NCBI GenBank assembly: GCA_904063045.1
Contig: CAJFCJ010000005.1
Span: 4,374,436-4,438,435 of the forward strand
DNA from: Dimorphilus gyrociliatus
Taxonomy: Eukaryota > Animalia > Annelida
Length of the DNA: 64,000 nt
Direction of reading: 5' to 3'
Part shown: piece after piece, positions 8,898-36,593 of the stretch
How the letters are laid out: each line of letters begins with the position of its first letter
Numbering within the stretch: the stretch's first letter is position 1
Position numbers and translations under genes: made by a program
The notes under the pieces: generated by a model
Told to the model about the DNA's origin: nothing
The model's input: only the letters and a program-made list of their open reading frames with translations
Databases searched by the model: none

Positions 8898-11102
8898 AAT
8901 TTTCAATCGGAAGAGAGCTGATAATAGGAGGTGGAGGAGGACGAGGAGGAGAAGGAGGAGAAGAAGAAGGACAAAGAAGATGATGGTATGAAGAGTTATA
9001 GAAGGAAAAGAGGAAAAATTAGCTTGTCCTATTAGAGAGAGAAAGGGAAGAAGACAGAGAAAAATTCCTCCTGAACAACACAAAAAAAGAGAGCGATCAA
9101 TGTGTGATTTGTTAACGGCAACCAATTCGAATTATAAATAAGCAGTTCTTAAAAAGTAAATATTCCAAATTCAAATAATTTAATATTGATTATATAAGCT
9201 TTCATATAAATTTCATTCATTCATTCATTCACTCGTTCATTTATTCATTCAATCATTCACGTAATTAGTCAATCAATCAATCACTTTTCCATAAAGATAA
9301 TGAAGATGATAAGAAATTTAAAGATATCTTTTGTTTTTTTGTTGTTTTTTTTTTTTCTATTTTCTCATCCTATACTTTTAATTTTAGAGGATAAAACACG
9401 AATTTTACGGTGACGACGACTCTGATGGTGTTGGAATGGAAACATTTCGAAAACTTTGTGGTTGGGGAGGAAGGGACTATAGATTATTCCTTTTGCATTA
9501 AATACAAAGAGTTTTGCAGAATGAAAAGATGATAACAGGATAACAAGGATTATTACATATTTAGGACAGCCACCCTCCTCCCCCTCCCTCCATATGAAAA
9601 TGAGGCAACATTGAATAAGGCGATAAAGGCGAATATCGCAATTGTTCTATTTTTAACGCCTACTATTCTTCAGTTGTGTTCAACATGTGCTTTCTCTTAT
9701 TACATGCATACGGAATAACTAATCCACGTGCTAAGAGAGTGATTATTTGATAAACGACCTGTTGAATCATAATGAGATGACAAATGATTTCTTTTTAAAA
9801 ACAATAAATTCAATGACCTATTCAAAAACGAATTTTGTCCATCAGCTAATGGACGACGACGATCTCGAGTGTTGTCCAGACAACGAACAATCGTGTAACC
9901 AGAATCCATTACGCTTCTATAACGCCTCTTCTAGCAGTCAAATCGTATTAATAAAATTTCATATAAAATATATATTATTCAATTTTTCTGTTTTTCTTTT
10001 TCAATCATTTCAAATCATTAATTCATTCTGTTCATATTAGAAAAAATTAGGCCTAAATCCAATTGAATTATCTCTTGAAACGATTTTTTCAGTTTAATCT
10101 TGTCATTTGTCGATATGAAATCAACTGATTGAACTCTTCCTTCTATGAGGAGGATTTGTTTTCTCCTCTCTCTCTCTCTCTTTCTCTCCCTCTTTAATTC
10201 CATATTTATTAAGTTTATTCTTTGGGAAAATTGTAAATAATTGTTCATTTTAGACCTTTTCTCTCCGCCCACCCCCACCCCCACCCCACTCTCTCTCTAT
10301 CTCTTCTCTCTCTTTCTCGTGTCTGGGTTCCCTTAGAATCTATTAATGAAACTTTATTGCCGTCTCCCTTATTAGATCAACAGTTTTTATTTGCTGTTAG
10401 TTTGTCAGCGATCTTAAACATCTTAAAGGAGGTGTGGGTGGGTTTTTACCTTTTCACTACATATATATATAAAGTATAATTCTTCTAGCTTATTCGATTT
10501 TCGAGTTGATTGAAGAAAAAAAAATGAACAAATGGATTTGAAAAGAAGAGAAAAACTTTCATTATTTATTCCATTTTTAAAAGGTCACGTTTAATACAAT
10601 TCACTTTTCTCTAATAGGAAAATGTTTTCACCATTTCACTCTTATTATTCACTTTCCTCCTTCTAAACACGGAATATTTGAGAAAGGCGTTGTCCATGTC
10701 TTCATGGATAAAAACAGATAGTTTATCAATTTTAATCAATACAATTTATTCTAAATATCTTATGACAGCCGGCATACGTTTGTTCTCTTTATAATCAATT
10801 TTCAATCCGTCACCTAGTTTATTTTTTATTTCCTTTACTTTACGTTTCCTGTTGTAATACGTCATCCTTTTACTTTCTAACTATAAAGTGTTTAATACTC
10901 CTTTAAGTCTTTATTACTTTAACTTGGGAAAGAGAAGGGCAAAAGCGCGGCTACTTCTTTTACCCTAGAAAGGAAGGCAGGAAGGAAGGAAGGATGAAAT
11001 AGAAAAGAGAACTATGTAGAAAAGAAAGATGATTGAAAAGTGGATAATAAATAAGAGAGAGATTGATTTTTAAATGAAATTTATTGAAATTGAAAGAGCA
11101 GT

Positions 11103-11356
11103 TTAAGCGTGTTTCAAGATGTTGTAGTAGCAGTTGGAGGAACCATTTTCGTGGCAAGCAGTCTCGTCAACTGGACAACAGTCGTGTTCATCTCCTCTGA
11201 TTGATGGACAGCATTTGAATCCGGCGTTGCAACAACCAGAAACGGTTGGCTCGTGCCAGCAGCAAATCTGACTGCCTGGTTGGCAAAAGTTGTCGGCGGG
11301 ACATCCCCATGCTCTGGTTGTGGTTGGAAGAGTGGTGGCTGCAAAAGGCAAAGAGT

Positions 11357-11396
<40 letters not shown>

Positions 11397-11451
11397 ACTT
11401 ACTGCAATAAGCGACAGCAACGAGAGCGGCGAGAGCAATCAACAATTTCAT
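11103..11451 (-). CDS. Small secreted 12-Cys granulin-like protein, copy A (exons 11451-11403, 11338-11103)
   Basis: Signal peptide MKLLIALAALVAVAYC, phase-1 GT-AG intron, then TTTLPTTTRAWGCPADNFCQPGSQICCWHEPTVSGCCNAGFKCCPSIRGDEHDCCPVDETACHENGSSNCYYNILKHA*. The gene model is solid; the granulin relationship is inferred from Cys order. Confidence 0.85.
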
Positions 11452-11528
11452 TTTTGGTTTGATTTGTAGTTCCTTGTACACTGCTACTAAAGAGTCAGAA
11501 ATGGATAATTAGTTCATTCAACCCGTTC

Positions 11529-11536
11529 CTTTTATA
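11529..11536 (-). promoter_or_regulatory. Candidate TATA box of granulin-like copy A
   Basis: TATAAAAG on the minus strand about 80 nt upstream of the ATG; identical in the duplicate at 36065-36072. Confidence 0.55.
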
Positions 11537-11905
11537 ATACTGAAATTTCAATGGGAAATGGCAGATAATAGATTTCGCTTTATCTTTATGTTGTTTTAAC
11601 TTTGACTGATCAAATTTCCACTATTAATAACATTTACACATTCTCTCCATCCATCTACTTTATTCTTTTTGAACAAAAAATAAAAAAAAAAAGAATTGAA
11701 TTATTTTTTTTTTCTTGAAAAAGAAATTCTTTTTTAATGACATCTGCTTCCTCACATAAAGTATACTTTATGCTTATCTTTGCAATTTTTACCTTTCTTC
11801 TTCATCCTTTCTATTCTTACTTTCTCTTTTTCAACGTACGATAGTTACATTCTGCCTTTGCCTTTTTGATATACTTTTAATCTTTGTCAGATATATAGCT
11901 ATACT

Positions 11906-12170: not shown

Positions 12171-12625
12171 ATGACAATCAAGAAAGTTACTTTTCTTCTA
12201 GCTCTCTTTTCTCTTCTATACATTCTGAAGTTTTCGGGCAAGTTTAACTTTTTCCCCTCCACCCCTCGGCTTATTGGACAAACTTCTTATTAAAGCTTCC
12301 TTTACATATGATATTATATTCTAGTGCATTTATTTCTTTGTTTAAAGTTATCGGTTATTTTTGAAAGTATTATATTACAGAGTCTGCTTCGACCACTCCT
12401 CAATTTTACAATTGTCGACCTAACAACCCTTGCTCGTCGTCCGGTCAAGTTTGCTGCTGGGAAGAAGATGTTGTAGCGGGATGTTGCGAACCAGGATTTA
12501 GATGTTGCCCTTCGCAAACAGGAGACAATCACGACTGCTGTCCGGATTCTCAAGGTGTTTGTCACGAGAGTGGGGGAGCGTATTGTTATTTGGCGAAACT
12601 TGTTAACAAAAGAGGAAATTTTTAA
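12171..12625 (+). CDS. Small secreted granulin-like protein, copy B (exons 12171-12237, 12381-12625; GC-AG intron); absent from the ORF track
   Basis: Exon 2 reads SASTTPQFYNCRPNNPCSSSGQVCCWEEDVVAGCCEPGFRCCPSQTGDNHDCCPDSQGVCHESGGAYCYLAKLVNKRGNF*. Best exon 1 is MTIKKVTFLLALFSLLYILKFS ending G|GCAAGT. Exon 2 is certain; exon 1 is less so because another hydrophobic start exists at 11967. Confidence 0.8.
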
Positions 12626-14331: not shown

Positions 14332-15548
14332 TTTTAAAACAAAAAGTCTAATAGAAAAAAAGAGAGAGAGAGGCCATGGCTTGATTTTTATCTAAAATAG
14401 AATAAAAAAGATTGAACAAGACTCTACAGATATTTCTATCCCGTCTCTCTCTCTCTCTCTCTCCCTCTCTGTCTCCCTCTTTTGATTGCTAACATATGTG
14501 AGGGGTACACTCATTTATTTGCTGTACTCTCCTTCATCGTAATTTTTCTACTCTTACTCCTACTCCTACTCCTGCACAACAACTAATTTTTACTTAAACT
14601 ATCTTTTTATTCTCTTAAAAAAGAGATAGAAAACAGTTAAAGGAAGAAATAAATGATCAAGTTTTCTATTCCTTTTTTGACTGAATGAAATACAAAAGTT
14701 TCGATTGGTAGAAGGTCTTTAGGCCTCATTTAAATATCAGTTTATATATATATTATATATAAATAATAAAAATATAGCTTTAATTTTATCTTTAATCTTA
14801 TTTTTAAAATATTTTTTATATCTAAATAAAAGAACCGAGTCTTTTGATTTGTTCATTTTTCTCTATCTTTCCTCTCTCTCTCTCTCTCTCTATCTCTCGT
14901 CTTGAGCTCTTTCAAATTCAACTTTCTATCAAGTTTATATGCTATCTATATTTTAAGTATCCGCATTAAAAACAAGAAGCTAAAAAAACAGGTTATGCAA
15001 TCTTTTCGTCCTATTCCTCCTACTTGTCTTAGTCATTCCTAATCCAATCTATGTTACCATGACAAAGAGTCGGCCTAGGATAAAACTGAACTGAAATATA
15101 GATGCCTAGAAATTATAGTTCAATAGTAAAATCTGACGAAAAGAAAGAGAAGTGTAACAAGCGGGATAGACAATGATCTATGGAGATAAAAGATGGCTCT
15201 TTGATACATTCTCTCCAAGACTATAAATAGGTATGTATCATACGGTATGTATGTATATTTATTTGGCTTGTTGATATAGTAAAAACTAAACGGGAGCGCA
15301 AAGTGGAAACTTTAACTGCGTCGCCTAGTCGTTAAGTGATAAAAATAGCAGATGTCGCATTACATGTACCTAATTTTTGTACGCTTTTTTTTCCAAATAT
15401 ACATCATTTTGACCCAGATTTTAAATATGAATAAATTCTGATGTAACGATGATAGCTATCTTATTATTTCCTCAACTCTTATTCTGGAAACTAGTTCTTC
15501 CGATTTCCCTTTCTTTTTCTTTGCATTTAGAGAAATCCAGCTAATAAA

Positions 15549-15993
15549 ATGTTTTCAAAAGCAATCCTACTGTTCTTTTTACTCTTTTGCTTCTTCTTCT
15601 CTCTTCACCAAGCAAGGATGATTAGCAATTTACAAGAAACCACTCCACAATTTGGTAATTGCAGGTAAGCGTGAACAGCTTGAATGAATGAACGATTCAG
15701 ACAATTAATTGAACGAAATTGATAAATATAAGATAGAACCAATTGTAAATCCATTTTTGGATTAAAATACTCTTTTCCCCTCGGCTATTCCCTATTATAG
15801 ACCAGACAACACTTGCTCGATACAAGGTGAAATTTGCTGTTGGGAAAGCAATACAGTTAGCGGTTGTTGTGAAACCGGATATAAATGTTGCCCCTCCCAA
15901 TCAGGAAGTGCGCACGATTGTTGCCCAGAAAGTGATGAAACTTGTCAAGGATCGCAATGCTATTTGGCCAAAGTTTATAAAAATTACAATTAA
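15549..15993 (+). CDS. Small secreted granulin-like protein, copy D (exons 15549-15664, 15801-15993); absent from the ORF track
   Basis: MFSKAILLFFLLFCFFFSLHQARMISNLQETTPQFGNC(R)|PDNTCSIQGEICCWESNTVSGCCETGYKCCPSQSGSAHDCCPESDETCQGSQCYLAKVYKNYN*; phase-2 GT-AG intron. Confidence 0.85.
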
Positions 15994-18844: not shown

Positions 18845-19696
18845 ATGAAACTAGTTTTTATTTCTGTTCTTTTATCTATTGGTTTGTCTTTAACCTTGCT
18901 TAGCTTTACCTTGAAAATACTTTATCTAAACTTTTTCTTTTCCCTATTGTCTCATCAACAAATAAAGCTACTTGCTATGCCAATGAATGTATTGGTAAAC
19001 CAGACGGAACGCATGTTAATCAGGCTTGCAATTACTACGTCGAATGTCGTAATCAACAAGAATACCCTTTCTATTGTAATCCCCCATTGGTTTATAATCA
19101 TTTAAAACGAAGATGTGACAAGTATGTTGTGTTCAATAGGCTGTTCACTTTTGCTTAAAACATTTCTTTACCTTAGTCCAGAAAGTACTCCTCCTCCATG
19201 TGGACAACAAGAGAATTGCGATTCCCTACCCGATGGAAAATATCCCATTCTACGATTCCAATGCAGATGTTATTTCACCTGTAGATCATCTATAAATATA
19301 GGAACCCAATGCTGTCCGGGTGGTTTGTAAAATACTTTCAATTTTTAAATACAGTGAAATGATGGAATGAAATTTCTTTCAATAGGTTTGGTTTGGGATA
19401 TATTTTCCGGAGTTTGTAATTGGGATTATCAGGTTCCTCCACCGTGCGGAACCAAACCAGTGCCAACGCCTCCAGTCGAAACAACGTCTACTCCAGTCAA
19501 AACAACGTCTGCTCCAGCCGAAACAACGTCTTCTCCTGCGGAAACAACAACTATGGGAAGCTCAGGTTCAGGATCAGGCTCAGGTTCAGGATCAGGCTCA
19601 GGTTCAGGATCAGGCTCAGGTTCAGGATCAGGCTCAGGTTCAGGCTCAACTTCAAATTTTGACACAAATTTCGATGAATTTGTATTGATAAATTAA
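18845..19696 (+). CDS. Secreted chitin-binding protein: signal peptide, 2x peritrophin-A (CBM14), Thr/Pro linker, Ser-Gly repeat tail (exons 18845-18881, 18968-19121, 19177-19322, 19386-19696)
   Basis: Domain 1: CIGKPDGTHVNQACNYYVECRNQQEYPFYCNPPLVYNHLKRRCD. Domain 2: CDSLPDGKYPILRFQCRCYFTCRSSINIGTQCCPGGLVWDIFSGVCNWD, with the typical CBM14 ending CPxGLVW...CxW. All splice sites GT-AG and in frame. Confidence 0.88.
19562..19648 (+). repeat. Coding 18-bp tandem repeat (TCAGGTTCAGGATCAGGC)x4 plus a partial unit, encoding (SG)n
   Basis: Read directly; in frame within exon 4 of the CBM14 gene. Confidence 0.95.
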
Positions 19697-21817: not shown

Positions 21818-23325
21818 TCAGTTCTTCGGACCGAAGGCATTCATGAGTTCTAGATAAGAAATATAAAGTTAGGAACAGTTAAACGAATAGGAAATGCTTT
21901 AGTTTCATTCTCTTTCTAAAACTTACCAATCGGTAGAGGGAATATGATGGTGGAATTCTTTTCTGCTGATATTTGCGTTAGAGTTTGAAGATATCGGAGT
22001 TGGAGAGCTCCCGTAGCCTCGTTTATAACATCGGCTGCTTCTTTCAATGCTCTAGAGGCGTTTTGTTCACCTTCCGCCGCGATAACCTTTGCTCTAGCGT
22101 CCCTGGTCGCTTCTGCCTCTGCCGCCATAGCCCTTTGTAGTTGAACAGGTAGTCGTACATCCTTAATTTCAACCCTTTCAACTTTAACACCCCATGGATC
22201 AGTACCTAATGGGAAGAGACAAATTTGAAGAATGTCTTAGATGGATAATTGGTAGAAGAAGAGGAAGAGGAAGAGGAAGAAGAAGAAGCAGACGAATGTG
22301 ATAAAGAAAAACAACCAAAGACTATACAACAAAAAGGTGACTCGCAGTGGTTTACTTTCTAGCAGAAACTTACCCTCATCAAGGACAATCTGAAGATGAA
22401 ATAAAACAATATATAGAGTAAAAATTCAAGATTATATAGTAGAGTATTGGATAGCAGAATAAAAGAGAAGCAGTCTACTTGTACAGTCTACAACTGTTGC
22501 ATATACAATATACTGTATATTGTATTCATTTAAATAAAGGTACATTTTACTGGATTTGTTTTATTTAGTGTCTGATTCTGTCATTCAATATTTACCTGCA
22601 TATTATTCGCTACTGTTTCCCTTTCTGTTAGAATATCGCTTAGCGTTTTTGTTCCTAAAATATTTCTTAATGTTGTTTGGGCTAAAAGGCGAGTTGATCT
22701 GGAACAATCTTCCACATTCACTACGGAAATCATTGGATTCGAAATTTTATAATAAACAACTGCATCAACCGCAATTGTTACCGAATCCTTTGTTAGAATC
22801 TCTTGAGGTGGAACGTCAAAGGAAACCGTACGCAAATCAACTTTGACAAAATGATCCAAACAGGGTATAATAAAGAATATTCCGGGTCCTCTAGACCCGG
22901 AAAGAACTCTTCCAAGTCTAAACATAACCGCTCTTTCGTATTCCTGTACGAGCTTTACGCACATGAATATTGAAATTGGAAAAGTTAAAAAGATAAGAAG
23001 GAGTGAAATTCCTTTCAGGATTATCTAGTAGCGGGAAAAGAATTATTCATTTAAGTTATAGCTGAAGAAGGAATAGAATAATTAGATAATTATACTGTAG
23101 ACTTACACCGCAACATCCAAGACTGCCTCCTCCTCCCTTGATCGTAACATTGTCGTCTGATTAATTTACAGAGTTAGGTTATTGAAAAAAAGAAAAGAGA
23201 AGAGGAAGAAAAGCATTTTTGTTTAAAAGTTGTAACTTTTTCAATTAGAAAAAGAAACGTATAGAAGATTTAAATAAGATTATTTCTGCATAGCTAACTG
23301 ATCATTTACCTTTCGAATTATCCAT
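21818..23325 (-). CDS. STOM: Stomatin/band-7 (SPFH) protein, paralog 1 (exons 23325-23310, 23156-23107, 23024-22596, 22389-22374, 22205-21927, 21849-21818)
   Basis: GCCG, hairpin segment [10 protein letters not shown], then [14 protein letters not shown]...[31 protein letters not shown]...[23 protein letters not shown]...LQLRYLQTL...[12 protein letters not shown]. Complete reading frame with two 16-nt micro-exons. Family-level symbol. Confidence 0.92.
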
Positions 23326-24760
23326 TCCAGCTAGTCAAAGAGTTTTAAATCTTTCATTCACCCTCTCTCTGTTCCTCTCCCGATCAAGAGATGTTTACAA
23401 TTAATTATATAAATTATGGTTCTAGTCTGGTTTATCCTCGCGCTGTAGTTTACCCTATTGAATTTTCCTCTTGGAGCAGGTAACACATTCGACTAGAGGG
23501 GTGTGGTTCCCTGATCAATAATTTATGTAATTATTTTCTTTTTAATTCTGTGCCTTTTTTTCTTTTTTACCTTTTGCATTTATACTCAAAACAGTGATTC
23601 CTTAATGTCTATGCATGCTTGCATGATTTCATTCCAAACAAATTAATTTACTTAATAAGGTCATCTCTCTTTTCCCATTTAATTTATATTATTCATTTAT
23701 ATATACAGTATACTGTATATGAATGTAAAGTACAATCTAGAGAATTAATCTCTTTAGTCCTATATCTACCTTTGGAAAATTCTCTTGCTTTTTGGTTTTT
23801 TATATTTCATATTTTTTCAACATTCAATATAAGGATTCTCTTTACTATTCTCCTTAATAAATGTTACATTTATTAATATCTAGTACAGTGTGAGACATCT
23901 ACTGTGTAATTTGTATATGCCGTATATATACCTTATATACGCTATTCTTTATAGCTGTTAGCTCAATAGAGCCTATTTCTCAGCCTGTCTAATGGATTTC
24001 TTTTGTTTTCTAAAGGCAATGTCGCTATCTTGTTAAAAAAATTAGAATGTAAACGTCAGTTGAAATGAATATTTAGTAACGATACTACTCTACAAACAAT
24101 TAGAATGCTTGTACGGATAATTTATACGCTTTCTTTAACATGTTTTAATAAGATATCTTCACCTGGTCTTTCTTTCCTTCTCCTTTTCGAATGCAGGGTA
24201 ACAGTCTTTAGACTACTCAAATTCGAAATGGAAAATTTTCACCAAGTTCATCTATTTTTTATTTCAATTCGAATTTAAAGCTTCGATATTTCCGGTTATT
24301 AACACAAAAAACAATAACGCATTTCTCCGACCTCTCGACTGACCTAGTTAAAAACATCACAATAAGCATTAATTCAATTTTTTTTTATTATCAAAAATTC
24401 CACAAGTGTTTTACTTATTACGATTAATGGAGATAAAAATTGGAGAGAAATAGGACTACAGTTGAAAGCGATTGTCTCATTAAAATGACAATAACCGTCT
24501 TTTAAGAAGGAAAAATGCGAATTTAGGAAGAGAGAAAGAGAAAGAACGTCTTGGAAAATATGAAAAAGAAAATGGGTAATCATTCGATAATAAGTCACTA
24601 ATTCGTAATATTTTGCTCTTAATCTTATCATAAAGATATTTACTATTATCAATAGCGATAAGAGAAAGAATTCATACTTAAATAAAGAGAGTAAAATCAA
24701 TTAAATCAATTAATCAACACTGCTGTAAAGTTGTTTGGGTATACTTTTGAATATACAAAC

Positions 24761-25680
24761 ATGCGAAAGATAGCTACAATCCTTCTTCCACTTTTCGGTA
24801 TTTTTCATTCATTGCCCTCTTCACCTGTTTCATTAGTCCTATTTTATAGCTTACACTCTGGCCAACGATTGCATTGGTAAACCCGACGGAACTCATGTTC
24901 ACCAAGCTTGTAATTACTATGTAGAATGTCGTAATCAACAAGAAGTTCCCGTCTATTGTAATCCACCATCGGTTTATAATCATGTGAAGAGAAAATGCGA
25001 TAAGTAAGTTATATTCTGTTCATTCTATCCGGCAAATTTGTTCGGATAATAACGAGAAAATCACCGATCAGTCCTCAGAACACACCACCTCCTTGCGGAG
25101 CTGAAGAGAAGTGCGATGGTTTGCCAAACGGAAGGTATCCCCTATTGAATCTTCAATGCCAATGCTATTTTACTTGTCAAGGAGGCACAAACATTGGAAC
25201 CCAATGCTGTCCAAATAGTTAATATTTCATTCAATAATTAATCCAAAATGAATATCGTTTGTAATCCATCTTTTCCTTTGAAATTCATTTATATTAGATT
25301 TGGTTTGGGATGTATTTACCGATGTATGTAATTGGCCAAATCTAACGCCTCCACCTTGCGGAACTAAACCACCAGAGATTCCTCTTCCCACTACAGCAGC
25401 ACCCCTGCCTACTACTAACACACCAAAGCCTGCTACTACTCAGGGTGCAATTCCTCAAACAACTTCACAATTTGGCTGTCCGCCTACCAATTTTTGCCAA
25501 TCAAATCAAATATGCTGCTGGCATAAACCAACTATTTCTGGTTGTTGTAACAGCGGTTTTAAATGTTGTCCATCGATAAGAGGCGATGACCATGATTGCT
25601 GTCCAGTAAATGAAGTCGGTTGTCACGAAAATGGCAGTTCTAATTGTTATTATAATATTTTGAGAACATCTAATAAATAA
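24761..25680 (+). CDS. Chimeric secreted protein: signal peptide, 2x CBM14, Pro/Thr linker, granulin-like 12-Cys domain (exons 24761-24797, 24850-25003, 25072-25217, 25298-25680)
   Basis: MRKIATILLPLFAYTLA-NDCIGKPDG...CCPNNLVWDVFTDVCNWP...PQTTSQFGCPPTNFCQSNQICCWHKPTISGCCNSGFKCCPSIRGDDHDCCPVNEVGCHENGSSNCYYNILRTSNK*. The end of CBM14 domain 2 and the Cys domain lie in one uninterrupted exon. Confidence 0.88.
24850..25376 (+). repeat. Direct repeat, about 527 bp, partner at 26625-27151 (offset 1775)
   Basis: Near-identical exons 2-3, introns 2 and 3 (68 and 80 nt in both copies) and start of exon 4. Confidence 0.92.
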
Positions 25681-26489
25681 ATGAAGATCAAAAGGAATTT
25701 TTATTTTCAAAAAGTACCTGTCTATCTTTTACTCTGTTTTATTGAAGTATACCATTAATGGTGGTATTTGACAAACATGTTTTTACTATTTCCTATGTTT
25801 TAGCATTCATTTTTTCAAGCTAGTAACATCATTGAAATACTTGAAAGATTTAGCTGAAAACAAACAAACAAACAAACAAAGCAACATTTTTTTTTCATTC
25901 ATTCAAAACTCCATCTCAATTTAAAGAATTACTTCACTTCTCACTCCAAAGAGAGTATGAATAATTAATGGAACTAATTGAGTACATACTTCAACGCCAA
26001 AATCATACGCAAGCTCCATTTAATTAATTAAACATAAAGAAGAAGGGTATGATACATAGACAAATGGAAATTTAGTTTAAATAGGTCAACTTTCCACTTT
26101 GAACGATATCATAAATAATATATTTTAAATATGGATAGGACCGAAAAAGATCTTTTCAATAATTAAGATATAGATAATATTCATAGTAGTCACGTGCTTC
26201 AATTCTAAACTGTTTGTATTATTAGCAAACTATACTTTACAATGAATGACGTAAAAGATAAACACAAAGCACTCGTCTTTCATAGATTAAACATATCTAC
26301 ACATTGATTTTTCTTTCAATTTCGCTACCAATCAATCAATTGCAAAAAATCATTTAATATAGTTATCTTCAAGATATTTAGCGTTATCAATAAAGATAAG
26401 AGAAAAAAAAAGTTCTATTTAAGTAGAATAAGTATAGAACAAATCTCTTTGATCTTTTTGGTCATAATCCTGTTGAGAAACATTCAAAG

Positions 26490-27191
26490 ATGATCAAGAT
26501 AATTGCACTTATCTTGCCATTTTTTGGTAGATTACGATTATTATGATTTTCTTTTGTCTCTTTCAAAAATTTTCATTCTTGAAGAGTTATCGTTAAAGTC
26601 GAATATAATTTTCGTATTTCGCAGTTTACGCTTTGGCCAACGATTGCATTGGTAAACCCGACGGAACTCATATTCACCAAGCTTGTAATTACTATGTAGA
26701 ATGTCGTAATCAACAAGAAGTTCCCGTCTTTTGTAATCCACCATCGGTTTATAATCATATGAAGAGAACATGCGATAAGTAAGTTGTATTCTATTCATTC
26801 TATTCGCTAAATTTGTTCGGATAATAACGAGAAAATCACCGATCAGCCCTCAGAACACACCACCTCCTTGCGGAAATGAAGAGAAGTGCGATGATTTACC
26901 AAACGGAAGGTATCCCCTATTGAATCTTCAATGCCAATGCTATTTTACTTGTCAAGGAGGCACAAACATTGGAACCCAATGCTGTCCAAATAGTTAATAT
27001 TTCATTCAATAATTAATCCAAAATGAATATCGTTTGTAATCCATCTTTTCCTTTGAAATTCATTCATATTAGGTTTGGTTTGGGATGTATTTACCGATGT
27101 ATGTAATTGGCCAAATCTAACGCCTCCACCTTGCGGATCTAAACCACCAGAAGCTACTCCTACCCCTTCTCTAAAGGCTAATCCGGAATAG
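26490..27191 (+). CDS. Secreted 2x CBM14 protein with a short tail (exons 26490-26526, 26625-26778, 26847-26992, 27073-27191); absent from the ORF track
   Basis: MIKIIALILPFFVYALA-NDCIGKPDGTHIHQACNYYVEC...CCPNSLVWDVFTDVCNWPNLTPPPCGSKPPEATPTPSLKANPE*; same exon lengths (37/154/146) as its two paralogs. Confidence 0.87.
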
Positions 27192-29597
27192 TCGATAAAT
27201 AACGTACGTAGCAACTTTACAAATTGGATCTGTTCTTCAGCCGCTTTTTGGTTTCTACAATCTAGAACTTTGACTATATCGTCCATCGTTTAGGGTCGAA
27301 AAACGAAATTGTTGGTTTATCGTCTATATATCCAATTGGAAGTTTTTTAAATCGTTATTACAACACCTTAATACAAATATATATATAGTTTATACTGTAT
27401 AAAGTATACTGTAGAACGCAATAAATGCATTAGTTGACCGTTTAAGGAATCCATTAGGCTTTTTGGTTTCAACACTTTTTGCATTAATTATTGAATTCTT
27501 CTCTAATTATATAAAAAATATCTGAAAGAAGCTTGGTTTGTATGCGTCAGACATAAAAAAAGTGTACGTTAGTTTGTATAGTAAACGATTACCAAGAGAG
27601 AATATAGAGACGTAACGATGTTCTAAGAACGATTATCGAAATCTTAATTAAAGTAACCAAGTAGTAATTAGTTATTATTACAATATAATTCGGTAAGGTT
27701 ATGTAATCCTGCTCGATACGCACTACATCTCTTGCTTTATCTTACTGAATCTATTTCTTTCAATTATCTTATCCGAAAAAGGTTGCTCTTTTACTGATAT
27801 CATTCTGAAGACATCGTATGCAATATCATACGATTAATGAATATTTAAATTTATTCATTAGTTCTATTAATTTCTCAGCTAATCTATTAGAAGAGAATAG
27901 TTTGTAGACCTGTTGTTTGGTAGTTTGACAGTGTTTTCCTTTTCTTTGCTCAGTTTGAGTTATATCGATGCACGCTTAACAAGGAAGGTATACTTTTATT
28001 GATATTACTATAGAGACTATCCTTTTATTCTTAATAACTGGAAGAAATGGAAGAGAAGACTACGCAATGAAATATAACCTTCTATATTTCATCAATCAGG
28101 AAATTGCCTATCTAGGATTTTTAGTGGGGAGTAAGTTTTGTTGCTAGTATAATCATCTAATATTTGGTTCCTGTACGGATTGACTTTGAAATACTATCAT
28201 CACTACTTGAGGAGCAATGAAGATGAGTTTGTCCCAAAGATTAATAATATTATTCTAAAGCAAACACTATATTCCCAACTATCTAGATATTGCGCAACAA
28301 ACGTCCTATTACAATGATTTAGCGTCGCTGCCTGCTTTTTATATTGTAGTAAATGGAAAAATATAGTTAATAATTCTCTCTGTTAATGAAGAGAGAATTT
28401 CACGCTATTAATGAAAATTAGGAGGCAAACCCCGATAAAGCATTGACCCTGCGCACCTAGGTGGACCTAACTATAATCTATATATACAGTATATATTGTA
28501 TATAAATCTTTGTTTACTTTACCCTTAAACTAATTAGACCCAACCCTAACTGTTGTAACTGTTGTATCCTTACAACCGCGCGAATGTTTCTCATGAATGC
28601 ATCCTAATTAACACGTAATAATCAGGTAAGAAGAGAGTATAAATGTCATTTTAGGTAATTGTAACGATAGTAATTATTATAGTTAATTAATTAATTATCG
28701 CCAATGCACCAATCCAGATAAAATCTTTATCAATAAAACAATGCAGAGGTAAAAAATTAATGATTTTTTTTTATTTAACATTTTCACTTGACAAAAATTT
28801 TGTAATCTAATGTAAAAAACAAACAGAACAGCTCTTCTTTTTATGGAGAGAGGGAGAGAGAAGAGAGGAGGATGAGGAGGAGGAGGAGGAAAGGAAAGAG
28901 AAATAAACAGGAGAAAATATAGTCATCTTTTCTTTATGAATGAAAGCTAAAAGTGAAACGTAAGGAAAATGTAGTAATGATTGATGGATAGGTTTAAATG
29001 GGGTCAACAATCAACAACAGTAACACATTGCTGCTGAATTGCATACATTTCAATATGTATGTTATAGATGCATGTCTAATAGATATACAGTATATATTAA
29101 TACATAAATTTATACACACTGTATGTACTAATATATATTGACCGGTAAATAGGTGAGATTCCAACTATGCGTTTAATATTTAATTGTAATAATACAACAT
29201 TCATAGTTCGAGTTATTTGCATAACGCTAGTATATATATAAACACCAATATACGAATACATAAATATATGTATATATTTATAAACAACTATTATTTATTC
29301 ATAGTTTTGAAGGTTTCATAAATAAAACTGCTATTGGTCATTGCCAGTTATTTTATTTATTGATTAACAAGTTATTACTGTCTAACTTTCAATATATTCA
29401 ACAGAAATTGATTTATTTGGAAAAGCTGATAATATTCCAGTATGGTGCCAGTCTTATAAATAGATGGAAACCGGTTCCATTAATATGAATAAATCAGATA
29501 TTGAATTAGAACCAGTCTAAAATCTCTATCGTTTTAAGCCAAACATTCGATGGTACCCTAAAAAACATAAACAACTGTTATTTGGGATAAATTCGAA

Positions 29598-31726
29598 ATG
29601 GAAAATTCCGAAGGTAAGATTATTAGTTATTCTAGTATTTATTCGTTGTAGTTGCAGCAGCTGTATACGAACGCATACGTAAATATATAACAAAGTCATC
29701 TCCATCCTATATACAGTATATGTAAATTGTACTGTATATAAGGATAAACAGTATACATATATTCTCTTTACTATACCAAACACGACGGATAAAGAATGAA
29801 ATTATAAGAAGATTTACAATCTGCCGTGTTTGTACATTCTAATTTAAATAGTATAATCCGTATGTAAAGTTTATATTTATCCAGTCTATCTAGGAAACAT
29901 ACCAACTAGTTTGTATATATAGATATACAAGTATATGTAGAGAAGGAATAGACGTAAATTATTTATTGTTTTTAACTACTTACTTCTACCAAACATTTAA
30001 AAGGAAAAGATTAAGAAGAATGAGGAGCAGAACAGAGAGATGCTTGCCCTTTTTTTTTAATTAAAAATGAATAGTTCAAGTAACCTTGGAAACGATTTAA
30101 TAATTTCAATATTCGAATCCTCCTCCTCTCCTTCTTTCTATTGCTAAATTACCACCTATTTGGGGAACGGATACAAAAAACAACTACAATATAATTTACC
30201 TATCTAGATGGAGAGGGAAAGGGAAATCGATACGAAGGGAACTTTATAGACGGTGTAAAAGGAATTATTGATTCTTCATGTAAAATTGATTAATGTAATA
30301 ACGTATGTATTTGTTGACTTGACAATTCATCATTTACTAATAACATTACAACTTAGAGCGTGTATTGCGTAATAAATTTATAGAGATTTACTTATAATTA
30401 TCCAATTTTCTGTGTATTCTATCATCAAGTTCAACCGTATTCATAATATCATTTTTTTTCTTATTTTCTCTCTCTCTCTCTCTCTCTCCCTCTCTCTCGC
30501 TCTCTTTAGCAAGAAAATACGATAGTGAAGGCGATGATTCGGGATGTTGTGGAGTGAGTAGTTTATACATTCATCCATCCATTACATAATTTCTATTGTT
30601 CACAGATAATACTCAAAGTTATTTCATTGGTTTTAATCGTTATCACTTTCCCCATATCAATTTGTATGACTCTGAAAATTGTACAAGAATACGAAAGAGC
30701 TGTTATGTTCAGACTTGGAAGGGTTCTACCCGGAGCCAGAGGACCTGGGATATTTTTTATAATACCTTGCCTCGATAATTTTGTCAAGGTTGATTTACGT
30801 ACAGTCTCCTTTGATGTTCCCCCTCAAGAGATTCTCACCAAGGATTCCGTAACGGTTGCCGTAGACGCAGTTGTTTATTATAGAATATCGAATCCTATGA
30901 TATCGGTGGTAAACGTTGAAGACTGTTCCCGATCGACCCGCCTCTTATCCCAAACAACGCTGAGAAATATTTTAGGGACAAAGACCCTAAGTGATATATT
31001 ATCAGAAAGAGAAACAGTTGCCACCAATATGCAGGTAGGAGAAGGGACAGAGATAATGAAAGAAATCTCTAATTAAAATTGGAATAAATTTACTATTCCC
31101 TCTCTTCCCCTTACAGAGCGTCCTCGATGAAGGCAAGTCTTTATAAGAGGGAAACGGACCTCTCTTTTCTTGTTGTTTATATAGAATACTGTATTTGTTA
31201 AACATTAAACAAACAAACATAACGAATGTTACATTCGTTCTATAAAAATCTATATACAGCGCATAAAGTCAGAATGATTATTTACCCCATTCGCTTTTAT
31301 ATTTAGGAACCGATCCGTGGGGTGTTAAGGTTGAAAGAGTGGAAATAAAAGACGTTCGTCTACCAGTTCAGCTGCAAAGAGCTATGGCGGCGGAAGCCGA
31401 AGCAACTAGAGATGCTAGAGCTAAAGTAATTGCGGCCGAAGGTGAACAAAATGCCTCTAGAGCACTAAAAGAAGCGGCCGACGTAATAAGCGAAGCATCG
31501 GGTGCCCTTCAGCTAAGATACCTACAAACACTCACACAAATATCGGCAGAGAAGAATTCGACAATAATCTTCCCTCTGCCAATTGGTTAGTCATTTATTT
31601 CTATTCAAATATTTATAATCAAAATTCTTCTCTTGTAAGAATTTCCTCTTTTTTGGCGTCAATTTTTCAATCATTTCCTTCTCTATTCCAGAATTGATGA
31701 GTGCTTTTATCGAAAGGAAGAAATAA
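29598..31726 (+). CDS. STOM: Stomatin/band-7 (SPFH) protein, paralog 2 (exons 29598-29613, 30510-30553, 30606-31034, 31117-31132, 31307-31585, 31692-31726)
   Basis: Exon 1 ATGGAAAATTCCGAAG|GT mirrors ATGGATAATTCGAAAG|GT of paralog 1. Exon lengths 16, 429, 16 and 279 are identical between the paralogs. The exon 4 donor is GC (GAAG|GCAAGT). Ends [11 protein letters not shown]. Confidence 0.92.
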
Positions 31727-35929: not shown

Positions 35930-36593
35930 CAAAAAGAATAAAGTAGATGGATGGAGAGAATGTGTAAATGTTATTAATAGTGGAAATTTGATCAGTCAAA
36001 GTTAAAACAACATAAAGATAAAGCGAAATCTATTATCTGCCATTTCCCATTGAAATTTCAGTATTATAAAAGGAACGGGTTGAATGAACTAATTATCCAT
36101 TTCTGACTCTTTAGTAGCAGTGTACAAGGAACTACAAATCAAACCAAAAATGAAATTGTTGATTGCTCTCGCCGCTCTCGTTGCTGTCGCTTATTGCAGT
36201 AAGTAGTCTCTCTCCCTCTCTCTCTCCCTCTCTCTTACAAACTCTTTGCCTTTTGCAGCCACCACTCTTCCAACCACAACCAGAGCATGGGGATGTCCCG
36301 CCGACAACTTTTGCCAACCAGGCAGTCAGATTTGCTGCTGGCACGAGCCAACCGTTTCTGGTTGTTGCAACACCGGATTCAAATGCTGTCCATCAATCAG
36401 AGGAGATGAACACGACTGTTGTCCAGTTGACGAGACTGCTTGCCACGAAAATGGTTCCTCCAACTGCTACTACAACATCTTGAAACACGCTTAAACTGCT
36501 CTTTCAATTTCAATAAATTTCATTTAAAAATCAATCTCTCTCTTATTTATTATCCACTTTTCAATCATCTTTCTTTTCTACATAGTTCTCTTT
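35930..36593. repeat. Inverted repeat, arm 2 (664 bp; partner at 11004-11671)
   Basis: See arm 1. Confidence 0.95.
36150..36494 (+). CDS. Small secreted granulin-like protein, copy A' (exons 36150-36198, 36259-36494)
   Basis: Same protein as copy A except CCNTG instead of CCNAG; intact splice sites. Confidence 0.85.

Follow-up and report, generated by a model that had tools for sequence, protein, structure and literature searches.

The gene at 24761-25680 (+) of the stretch of Dimorphilus gyrociliatus DNA analysed here (64,000 nucleotides of contig CAJFCJ010000005.1, hereafter the window) is a genuine transcribed gene for a secreted protein, in which two chitin-binding CBM14 domains are joined to a granulin-like module with 12 cysteines. 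This architecture is unusual, and it is real and expressed. Taken as a whole, the data are best explained by an old fusion, later overprinted by a 540-bp gene conversion, whose product would display the module on a chitin matrix; we consider this explanation moderately probable.

Structure and transcription of the chimeric gene

In the AT-rich window (31% GC, short GT..AG introns) a gene of four exons was read from the sequence, with GT..AG borders at every intron. Exon 1 (24761-24797, +), delimited by its ATG and a GT donor, encodes the predicted signal peptide (MRKIATILLPLF plus one base, phase 1), and both its length of 37 nt and its phase 1 recur in the neighbouring paralogue (26490-26526) and in a third paralogue (18845-18881). 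Exon 2 (24850-25003, +) encodes the first CBM14 domain and matched Pfam PF01607 with 33.4 bits (E 4.9e-08), above the gathering cut-off of 22.1. Exon 3 (25072-25217, +) contains the final cysteine of this domain and the N-terminal two thirds of the second one; alone it gave a partial PF01607 match (16.7 bits, E 0.0084, profile positions 1-33) that stays below the cut-off because intron 3 splits the second domain and leaves its remainder in exon 4. Domain searches were run exon by exon on unspliced sequence, so that the second domain and the full-length protein were scored in parts; by reading, the cysteine spacing of the second domain fits a six-cysteine CBM14 domain with one additional pair. 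Exon 4 (25298-25680, +) is a single open frame encoding the end of the second CBM14 domain (to ~25365), a Pro/Thr linker of ~38 aa (~25366-25476), the 12-cysteine module (25477-25647), a tail and the stop codon TAA (25678-25680). An AATAAA poly(A) signal (25672-25677, +) overlaps the final two codons, and the RNA depth of run X3 ends before 25634-25727.

RNA contigs of three runs (X1, X2 and X3) were aligned to 24600-27400 (2,801 letters). The X1 contig covers 25131-25217 and 25298-25468, joined by the GT..AG splice 25217>25298, and the X3 contig covers 25334-25579, both with 0 mismatches and both reaching well over 31 letters to either side of 25376. As X3 includes the spliced joints 25217>25298 and 26778>26847, this material is derived from cDNA. 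Contiguity across 25370-25500, on which the sequence-only reading had staked its chimera, is thus borne out by RNA of two runs that crosses 25376 without a mismatch. Exon 1 and intron 1 of the chimera were covered by no RNA contig in the region 24600-27400. The neighbouring gene is covered by spliced contigs of X2 and X3, with X2 continuing past the stop codon to 27357. The X2 contig at 26939-27357, from a coral metatranscriptome, corresponds to the spliced mRNA of the neighbour (496 aligned bases, 8 differences), and that coral seems to be home to a close strain of D. gyrociliatus.

The 12-cysteine family

The window contains six 12-cysteine modules. Besides the chimera, five genes of the cluster encode the module as a free peptide, namely DgyrCDS4124, 4125 and 4131, which are exact matches to three small proteins of the window (A, the 14089 gene and A', respectively), and the genes at 12401 and 15784. 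Closest to the chimera tail is A' (DgyrCDS4131; 36151-36494, +), a two-exon gene for a signal peptide and a 12-cysteine module. Gene A (DgyrCDS4124; 11103-11490, upper end approximate, minus strand) is its near-identical inverted copy, and self-BLASTN aligned 10979-11684 with 36618-35918 at 97.6% identity.

The modules of A (11106-11315, -) and A' (36282-36491, +) have a GC3 of 0.51, compared with 0.24-0.35 in the other modules and the CBM14 exons, and there are no synonymous differences between them, which suggests that codon bias is strong (high expression, perhaps) and that the two copies are still being homogenised over a distance of 24 kb. Their intron (36200-36240; 11360-11440) consists largely of a (CT)n/(TC)n microsatellite whose length differs between the copies. 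Beside gene A, at 9858-9905 (+), a short in-frame sequence (DDDDLECCPDNEQSCNQNP) resembles the GD-H-D-CCP-x6-C part of the module (tblastn E 0.002) and may be the relic of a decayed seventh copy.

A profile search of 1.84 billion representative proteins recovered five real clusters of the family: two from D. gyrociliatus, which are proteins of the window, one Tara Oceans transcript (P0004) and two from Logan assemblies of other runs (P0003 and P0005). An extra match, P0006, was rejected as a tandem-repeat artefact of 1512 aa. When exon 4 and the alignment were used as queries in word-index searches, no cluster beyond the five known ones came up, within a length window that omits the full-length protein of ~238 aa. 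Three contigs carrying P0003 (L002-L004) match 15338-15939 at 72-78% nucleotide identity in two adjacent blocks and look like the orthologous locus in a related species. In the copy at 15784-15990 (+) and in P0003 (L002 286-507), its apparent orthologue, the first cysteine is replaced by Y or H, leaving 11 cysteines, so that the odd cysteine is apparently conserved between the species. The 12-cysteine family is small, lineage-restricted and very rare, occurring in a few tiny marine animals.

Relation of the module to granulins

By spacing and alignment, the module of the chimera reads C5C5CC8CC5CC9CC6C7C, and nine family members conform to C5C5-6CC8-10CC5CC9CC5-6C4-7C. The published granulin motif, X2-3CX5-6CX5CCX8CCX6CCX5CCX4CX5-6CX2 (PMC1310530), agrees with this in the number of cysteines and in the succession of single and paired ones. 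In the N-terminal half no spacing departs from that of granulins by more than one residue, and H-x-CCP is a conserved motif, whereas the loops of the C-terminal half (x5, x9, x5-6, x4-7) deviate from those of granulins (x6, x5, x4, x5-6). The enlarged CC-x9-CC loop carries, according to the alignment, an RGD motif (25579-25587, +) that occurs only in the chimera and A/A' among the aligned modules; any function of it is speculative.

For six members, the Pfam Granulin model PF00396 gave no match at E<=10; sequence and profile searches of the PDB found no granulin; and a profile of the six window copies found no canonical granulin among 1.84 billion representative proteins. A spider double-knot toxin in the PDB sequence search (E=7) was discarded as noise. 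When language-model features were compared, granulin clusters of PF00396 ranked first both for the chimera module (0.84) and for P0004, the most divergent member (0.79), each below the 0.9 confidence line. An AF2 model calculated from the nine-sequence alignment (model 1, pLDDT 81.9) consists of stacked beta-hairpins. Its structural alignment with 48,161 PDB representatives produced only six matches at Z>=2, with zebrafish granulin AaE at the top (Z 2.7, 50/56 residues, 30% identity) and carp granulin-1 also among them (Z 2.0, rmsd 1.6 A, 30/30 residues), Z values that are low and tied with those of unrelated folds. In the ESM Atlas shape search a granulin was the best match (TM 0.54). Foldseek with model 1 returned nothing below E=2 in the PDB, and a second model, built on P0004, had no granulin among its matches at Z>=2.

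The whole module lies in one exon, both here and in the related fusion on contig L001 described below. Granulin modules are typically split into an N and a C exon, but amphioxus and sea urchin have modules encoded by one exon (PMC4527844), which makes the one-exon structure weak evidence against granulin ancestry.

We therefore call the module granulin-like, its family membership being unproven. The designation as a granulin-like domain in the sequence-only reading holds for the cysteine framework, the feature comparison and some of the fold searches; Pfam does not call the tail a Granulin. The main competing view is that the module is no granulin homologue at all and that an independently evolved disulfide ladder, for instance a structural cross-linker, a second carbohydrate-binding unit or an RGD adhesion unit, would make the protein a multivalent matrix organiser. 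This is compatible with the missing HMM or profile link to PF00396, the different C-terminal loop lengths, the second model without a granulin match, the single exon in place of the typical N/C split (PMC4527844) and the RGD conserved in the chimera and A/A'. Against it stand the N-terminal spacing that is granulin-like within one residue, the four central CC doublets that are a granulin hallmark, the retained H-x-CCP and the first rank of granulins in three types of search (features, PDB structure and Atlas shape). On balance we regard an independent ladder as a tentative and rather unlikely alternative, and the module as probably descended from granulins.

Predicted role of the fusion protein

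The tandem CBM14 domains would anchor the protein in a chitin-containing extracellular matrix, and the stiff Pro/Thr linker, probably O-glycosylated, would hold the granulin-like module off this matrix. Chitin binding and linker glycosylation are predictions, and tethering to chitin, as proposed earlier for this gene, is plausible; most likely, the role of the protein is to display the module on a matrix of chitin.

It had also been proposed that the peptide is released by cleavage in the linker. The chimera would then be a pro-protein, its CBM14 part acting as a carrier or targeting region from which the 12-cysteine peptide is cut free, much as progranulin releases its granulin modules by proteolysis of the joining sequences (PMC4527844), and the same kind of module is indeed encoded as free secreted peptides by five neighbouring genes. 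No dibasic, RXXR or furin-type site, however, was found in the linker of either species' fusion, so that release finds no support from motifs. Moreover, Pro/Thr-rich linkers are usually glycosylated and protease-resistant, and with five free versions already encoded, a carrier would be superfluous for producing a free peptide. We consider the pro-protein fairly improbable.

According to a further reading, which we hold to be quite improbable in its entirety, a lineage-restricted offshoot of the granulin fold is bound to chitin through the CBM14 domains as a ligand, with its RGD loop as a link to cells or with antimicrobial activity, and A/A' have escaped from the fused gene. If this were true, the RGD module would act in signalling or adhesion between the chitinous extracellular matrix and cells or, alternatively, would arm the matrix as an antimicrobial peptide, and 'domain escape' from the fused gene would have given rise to the highly codon-biased A/A', rather than the other way round.

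Probable gene conversion and the age of the fusion

Two further CBM14 paralogues are present in the window. The neighbour (26490-27191, +) encodes a signal peptide, two CBM14 domains and a tail of 12 residues with no cysteine module, and a relic of such a module was looked for 3' of this gene and not found. The third paralogue (18845-19696, +) encodes a signal peptide, two CBM14 domains and a mucin-like stretch of Pro/Thr, after which it ends in a (GS)n tail, a perfect repeat of ~33 residues (19552-19650, +). Its CBM14 exons are 71% (aa) and 68% (nt) identical to those of the chimera (dS 1.8, dN 0.21). The three paralogues have the chitin-binding head in common and differ in their tails.

Near identity of the chimera's N-terminal part to the neighbour, as stated in the sequence-only reading, is confined to a tract of 540 bp (24837-25376, +) that self-BLASTN aligned with 26612-27151 at 95.6% identity. 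This tract spans introns 2 and 3 and the final 13 bases of intron 1; its 24 differences comprise 10 intronic and 14 exonic ones, and 150 bp (25126-25275) are identical. Per 50 bp, identity to the neighbour amounts to 92-100% in 24876-25375 and to 40-60% on both sides. Within the tract dS is 0.04, whereas exon 1 is ~62% identical (by eye), and intron 1, the promoter and the 3' ends are at background level and cannot be aligned. A sharp-ended, near-identical tract that includes introns and is embedded between a diverged exon 1 and diverged flanks fits gene conversion between old tandem paralogues.

The match of high identity ends exactly at 25376, as had been noted. Since the tract stops where homology stops, 25376 marks the edge of a conversion tract and is no dated breakpoint. 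Accordingly, the earlier placement of the junction within exon 4 stands, as the change from CBM14 to linker and module occurs inside this exon, and 25376 itself is not necessarily the point of fusion. Two stomatin/SPFH-like paralogues (21916-22964, -, and 30627-31590, +; ~80% nt identity) flank the chimera and its neighbour in inverted orientation. With A (-) and A' (+) the gene order is mirrored, as would be expected if the segment around the two CBM14 genes had long ago undergone an inverted duplication.

The tail of the chimera is closest to A/A', as the sequence-only reading had it: in self-BLASTN, 25480-25668 aligned with A' at 36298-36487 (75% identity) and with A at 11110-11299 on the minus strand (74.5%). 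Likewise, the two gene types do lie within 15 kb, with A and A' 10-13 kb away and the neighbour adjoining. In the comparison with A', 46 of 57 core residues of the module are identical (dN 0.125) and the synonymous sites are saturated (pS 0.89), a saturation to which opposite codon preferences (GC3 0.24 in the chimera, 0.51 in A/A') contribute. Such a pattern indicates that the tail is probably old and under purifying selection.

A collinear fusion was found in another organism. P0005 contains an ORF resembling exon 4, in which a CBM14 end (CNWIYNVPPPCGTKPP) is followed by a 36-residue Pro/Thr/Ser linker and a 12-cysteine module. On the two contigs that carry it (L001 and L005) this ORF is preceded by CBM14 exons whose introns have the positions and phases of introns 2 and 3, and the CBM14 end continues into the module without an intron, as in the chimera. 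The exon-4 products of the window and L001 align end to end with 41% identity and 4 gap positions (E 7e-28). Proteins of L001/L005, including a complete TRM10-like ORF of 357 aa, share no 90% cluster with any D. gyrociliatus protein; introns on these contigs are three to four times longer than those of D. gyrociliatus; and a run search for the chimera listed no run from 2023, the likely year of the L001/L005 run accessions. For these three reasons L001/L005 are not from D. gyrociliatus.

P0005 has motifs common to the chimera and A/A' (NFC and CCWH-P--SGCC) and grouped with them in a small ML tree of the modules, with weak support (77/81). In the module core, the chimera is 81% identical to A/A' and 54% identical to the fusion of the other organism, and for the CBM14 part dN to the chimera is 0.35 for that fusion and 0.21 for the third paralogue. 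The L001/L005 locus is not syntenic with the window. Given this lack of synteny and the more distant CBM14 part, the fusion on L001 may be orthologous to a different paralogue or may have arisen independently. On L005 (1347-16000) the fusion gene lies downstream of genes for a TRM10-like protein, a TPT/EamA transporter, a ceramide-kinase-like protein, a DUF8415 protein and a protein of 771 aa, none of which is present in the window.

All in all, an old and conserved fusion, overprinted by gene conversion, is most likely, not a recent one. At its origin, a CBM14 gene with a Pro/Thr-rich tail would have fused, with the reading frame kept, to the one coding exon of a free 12-cysteine gene, and a likely route is that sequence coding for Pro/Thr underwent an in-frame deletion or an unequal exchange. 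The linker appears to be composite: its start resembles the mucin stretch of the third paralogue (a weak match of low complexity), and its end, IPQTTSQFG, resembles the Thr-rich leaders of free peptides (TTLPTTTRAWG, STTPQFYN). The fusion would then have been kept by purifying selection, and the 540-bp conversion between the chimera and its neighbour, by then old tandem paralogues, would have followed later. As the chimera tail is much closer to A/A' than to P0005, a later origin or a later conversion of the tail would also fit. Recent insertion of a CBM14 cassette into a peptide gene was rejected, because exon 1, with its 37 nt and phase 1, is that of a CBM14 gene.

The sequence-only reading had taken the gene for a young chimera, made inside the cluster by the recent joining of a fresh neighbour-type CBM14 copy to an A-type gene. 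At first sight the 95.6% identity of the CBM14 part to the neighbour (dS 0.04), the position of A and A', the nearest relatives of the tail, at a distance of 10-13 kb, and the higher identity of the tail core to A/A' (81%) than to the fusion of the other organism (54%) speak for this. The similarity of the CBM14 part is, however, confined to a sharply bounded tract that fits gene conversion, the tail is synonymously saturated relative to A/A' (pS 0.89 against A'), exon 1 is of the CBM14-gene type, and a collinear fusion exists in another organism. In addition, the divergence from the neighbour in exon 1, in intron 1 and on both flanks is old, which excludes a recent copy of the whole gene. A young origin is thus very unlikely, and the claim was abandoned in favour of the old fusion. 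Finally, that two distinct genes were falsely joined by assembly or annotation, as tandem paralogues and repeats of the cluster might mislead an assembler, can be dismissed, because mismatch-free RNA contigs of two independent runs (X1, which is spliced, and X3) span the junction, the whole of exon 4 is an open frame, and the same layout recurs on contigs of another organism from two runs.

Comparison with known systems and significance

A tandem of CBM14 domains with a mucin-like stretch is the hallmark of peritrophin-type chitin-matrix proteins. Like the peritrophins of the insect peritrophic matrix and other mucin-like ChtBD2 proteins, the chimera is secreted and has PF01607 domains in tandem, behind which comes a mucin-like stretch rich in Pro/Thr; peritrophin-type genes are also tandemly duplicated, as in the window, where the third paralogue (18845-19696) is a plain example. 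In chitin structures of annelids (tubes), ChtBD2 proteins are matrix components that were expanded by tandem duplication (PMC8476170). Unlike peritrophins and these annelid tube proteins, the chimera ends in a 12-cysteine granulin-like module.

The module itself shares with granulins (PF00396; zebrafish AaE, 6cku; carp granulin-1, 1qgm) the 12 cysteines with four central CC doublets, the spacing of the N-terminal half to within one residue, H-x-CCP and, as predicted here, the stack of beta-hairpins, and fish possess small secreted granulins of a single module. It differs from them by CC-x9-CC in place of CC-x5-CC, by its single exon, by its CBM14 partner and by being missed by the Pfam HMM and by profiles. 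Within the cluster, the free peptides contain the same module, 41-75% identical to that of the chimera across the aligned domain, encoded by one exon that follows a phase-1 intron and, like that of the chimera, preceded by a short Thr-rich leader ahead of the first cysteine, but in the free peptides only a signal peptide stands before it.

In plants, RD21-type papain-like proteases are secreted and, like the chimera, carry a C-terminal granulin-type module after a proline-rich linker; a plant protease-granulin cluster was the top language-model match of the module. Their N-terminal partner, however, is a protease and not CBM14, and there is no sign of common descent of the fusions. To our knowledge, granulin fusions outside plants are hardly known. 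In the literature, the granulin motif is said to show 'a very restricted incidence', and it is seldom combined with other domains (PMC4527844). A literature search for CBM14, ChtBD2 or peritrophin together with granulin retrieved only papers on baculovirus 'granulin' and no description of the combination, and a search for literature linking D. gyrociliatus and granulin found none.

The finding has no bearing on any long-standing open question, and the family is restricted to a handful of minute marine animals. The chimera and its neighbour provide a clean, small case of gene conversion that makes an old gene look young. The conserved fusion, existing beside free single-module peptides, would be a useful natural experiment in which an immobilised and a diffusible form of such a module could be compared.
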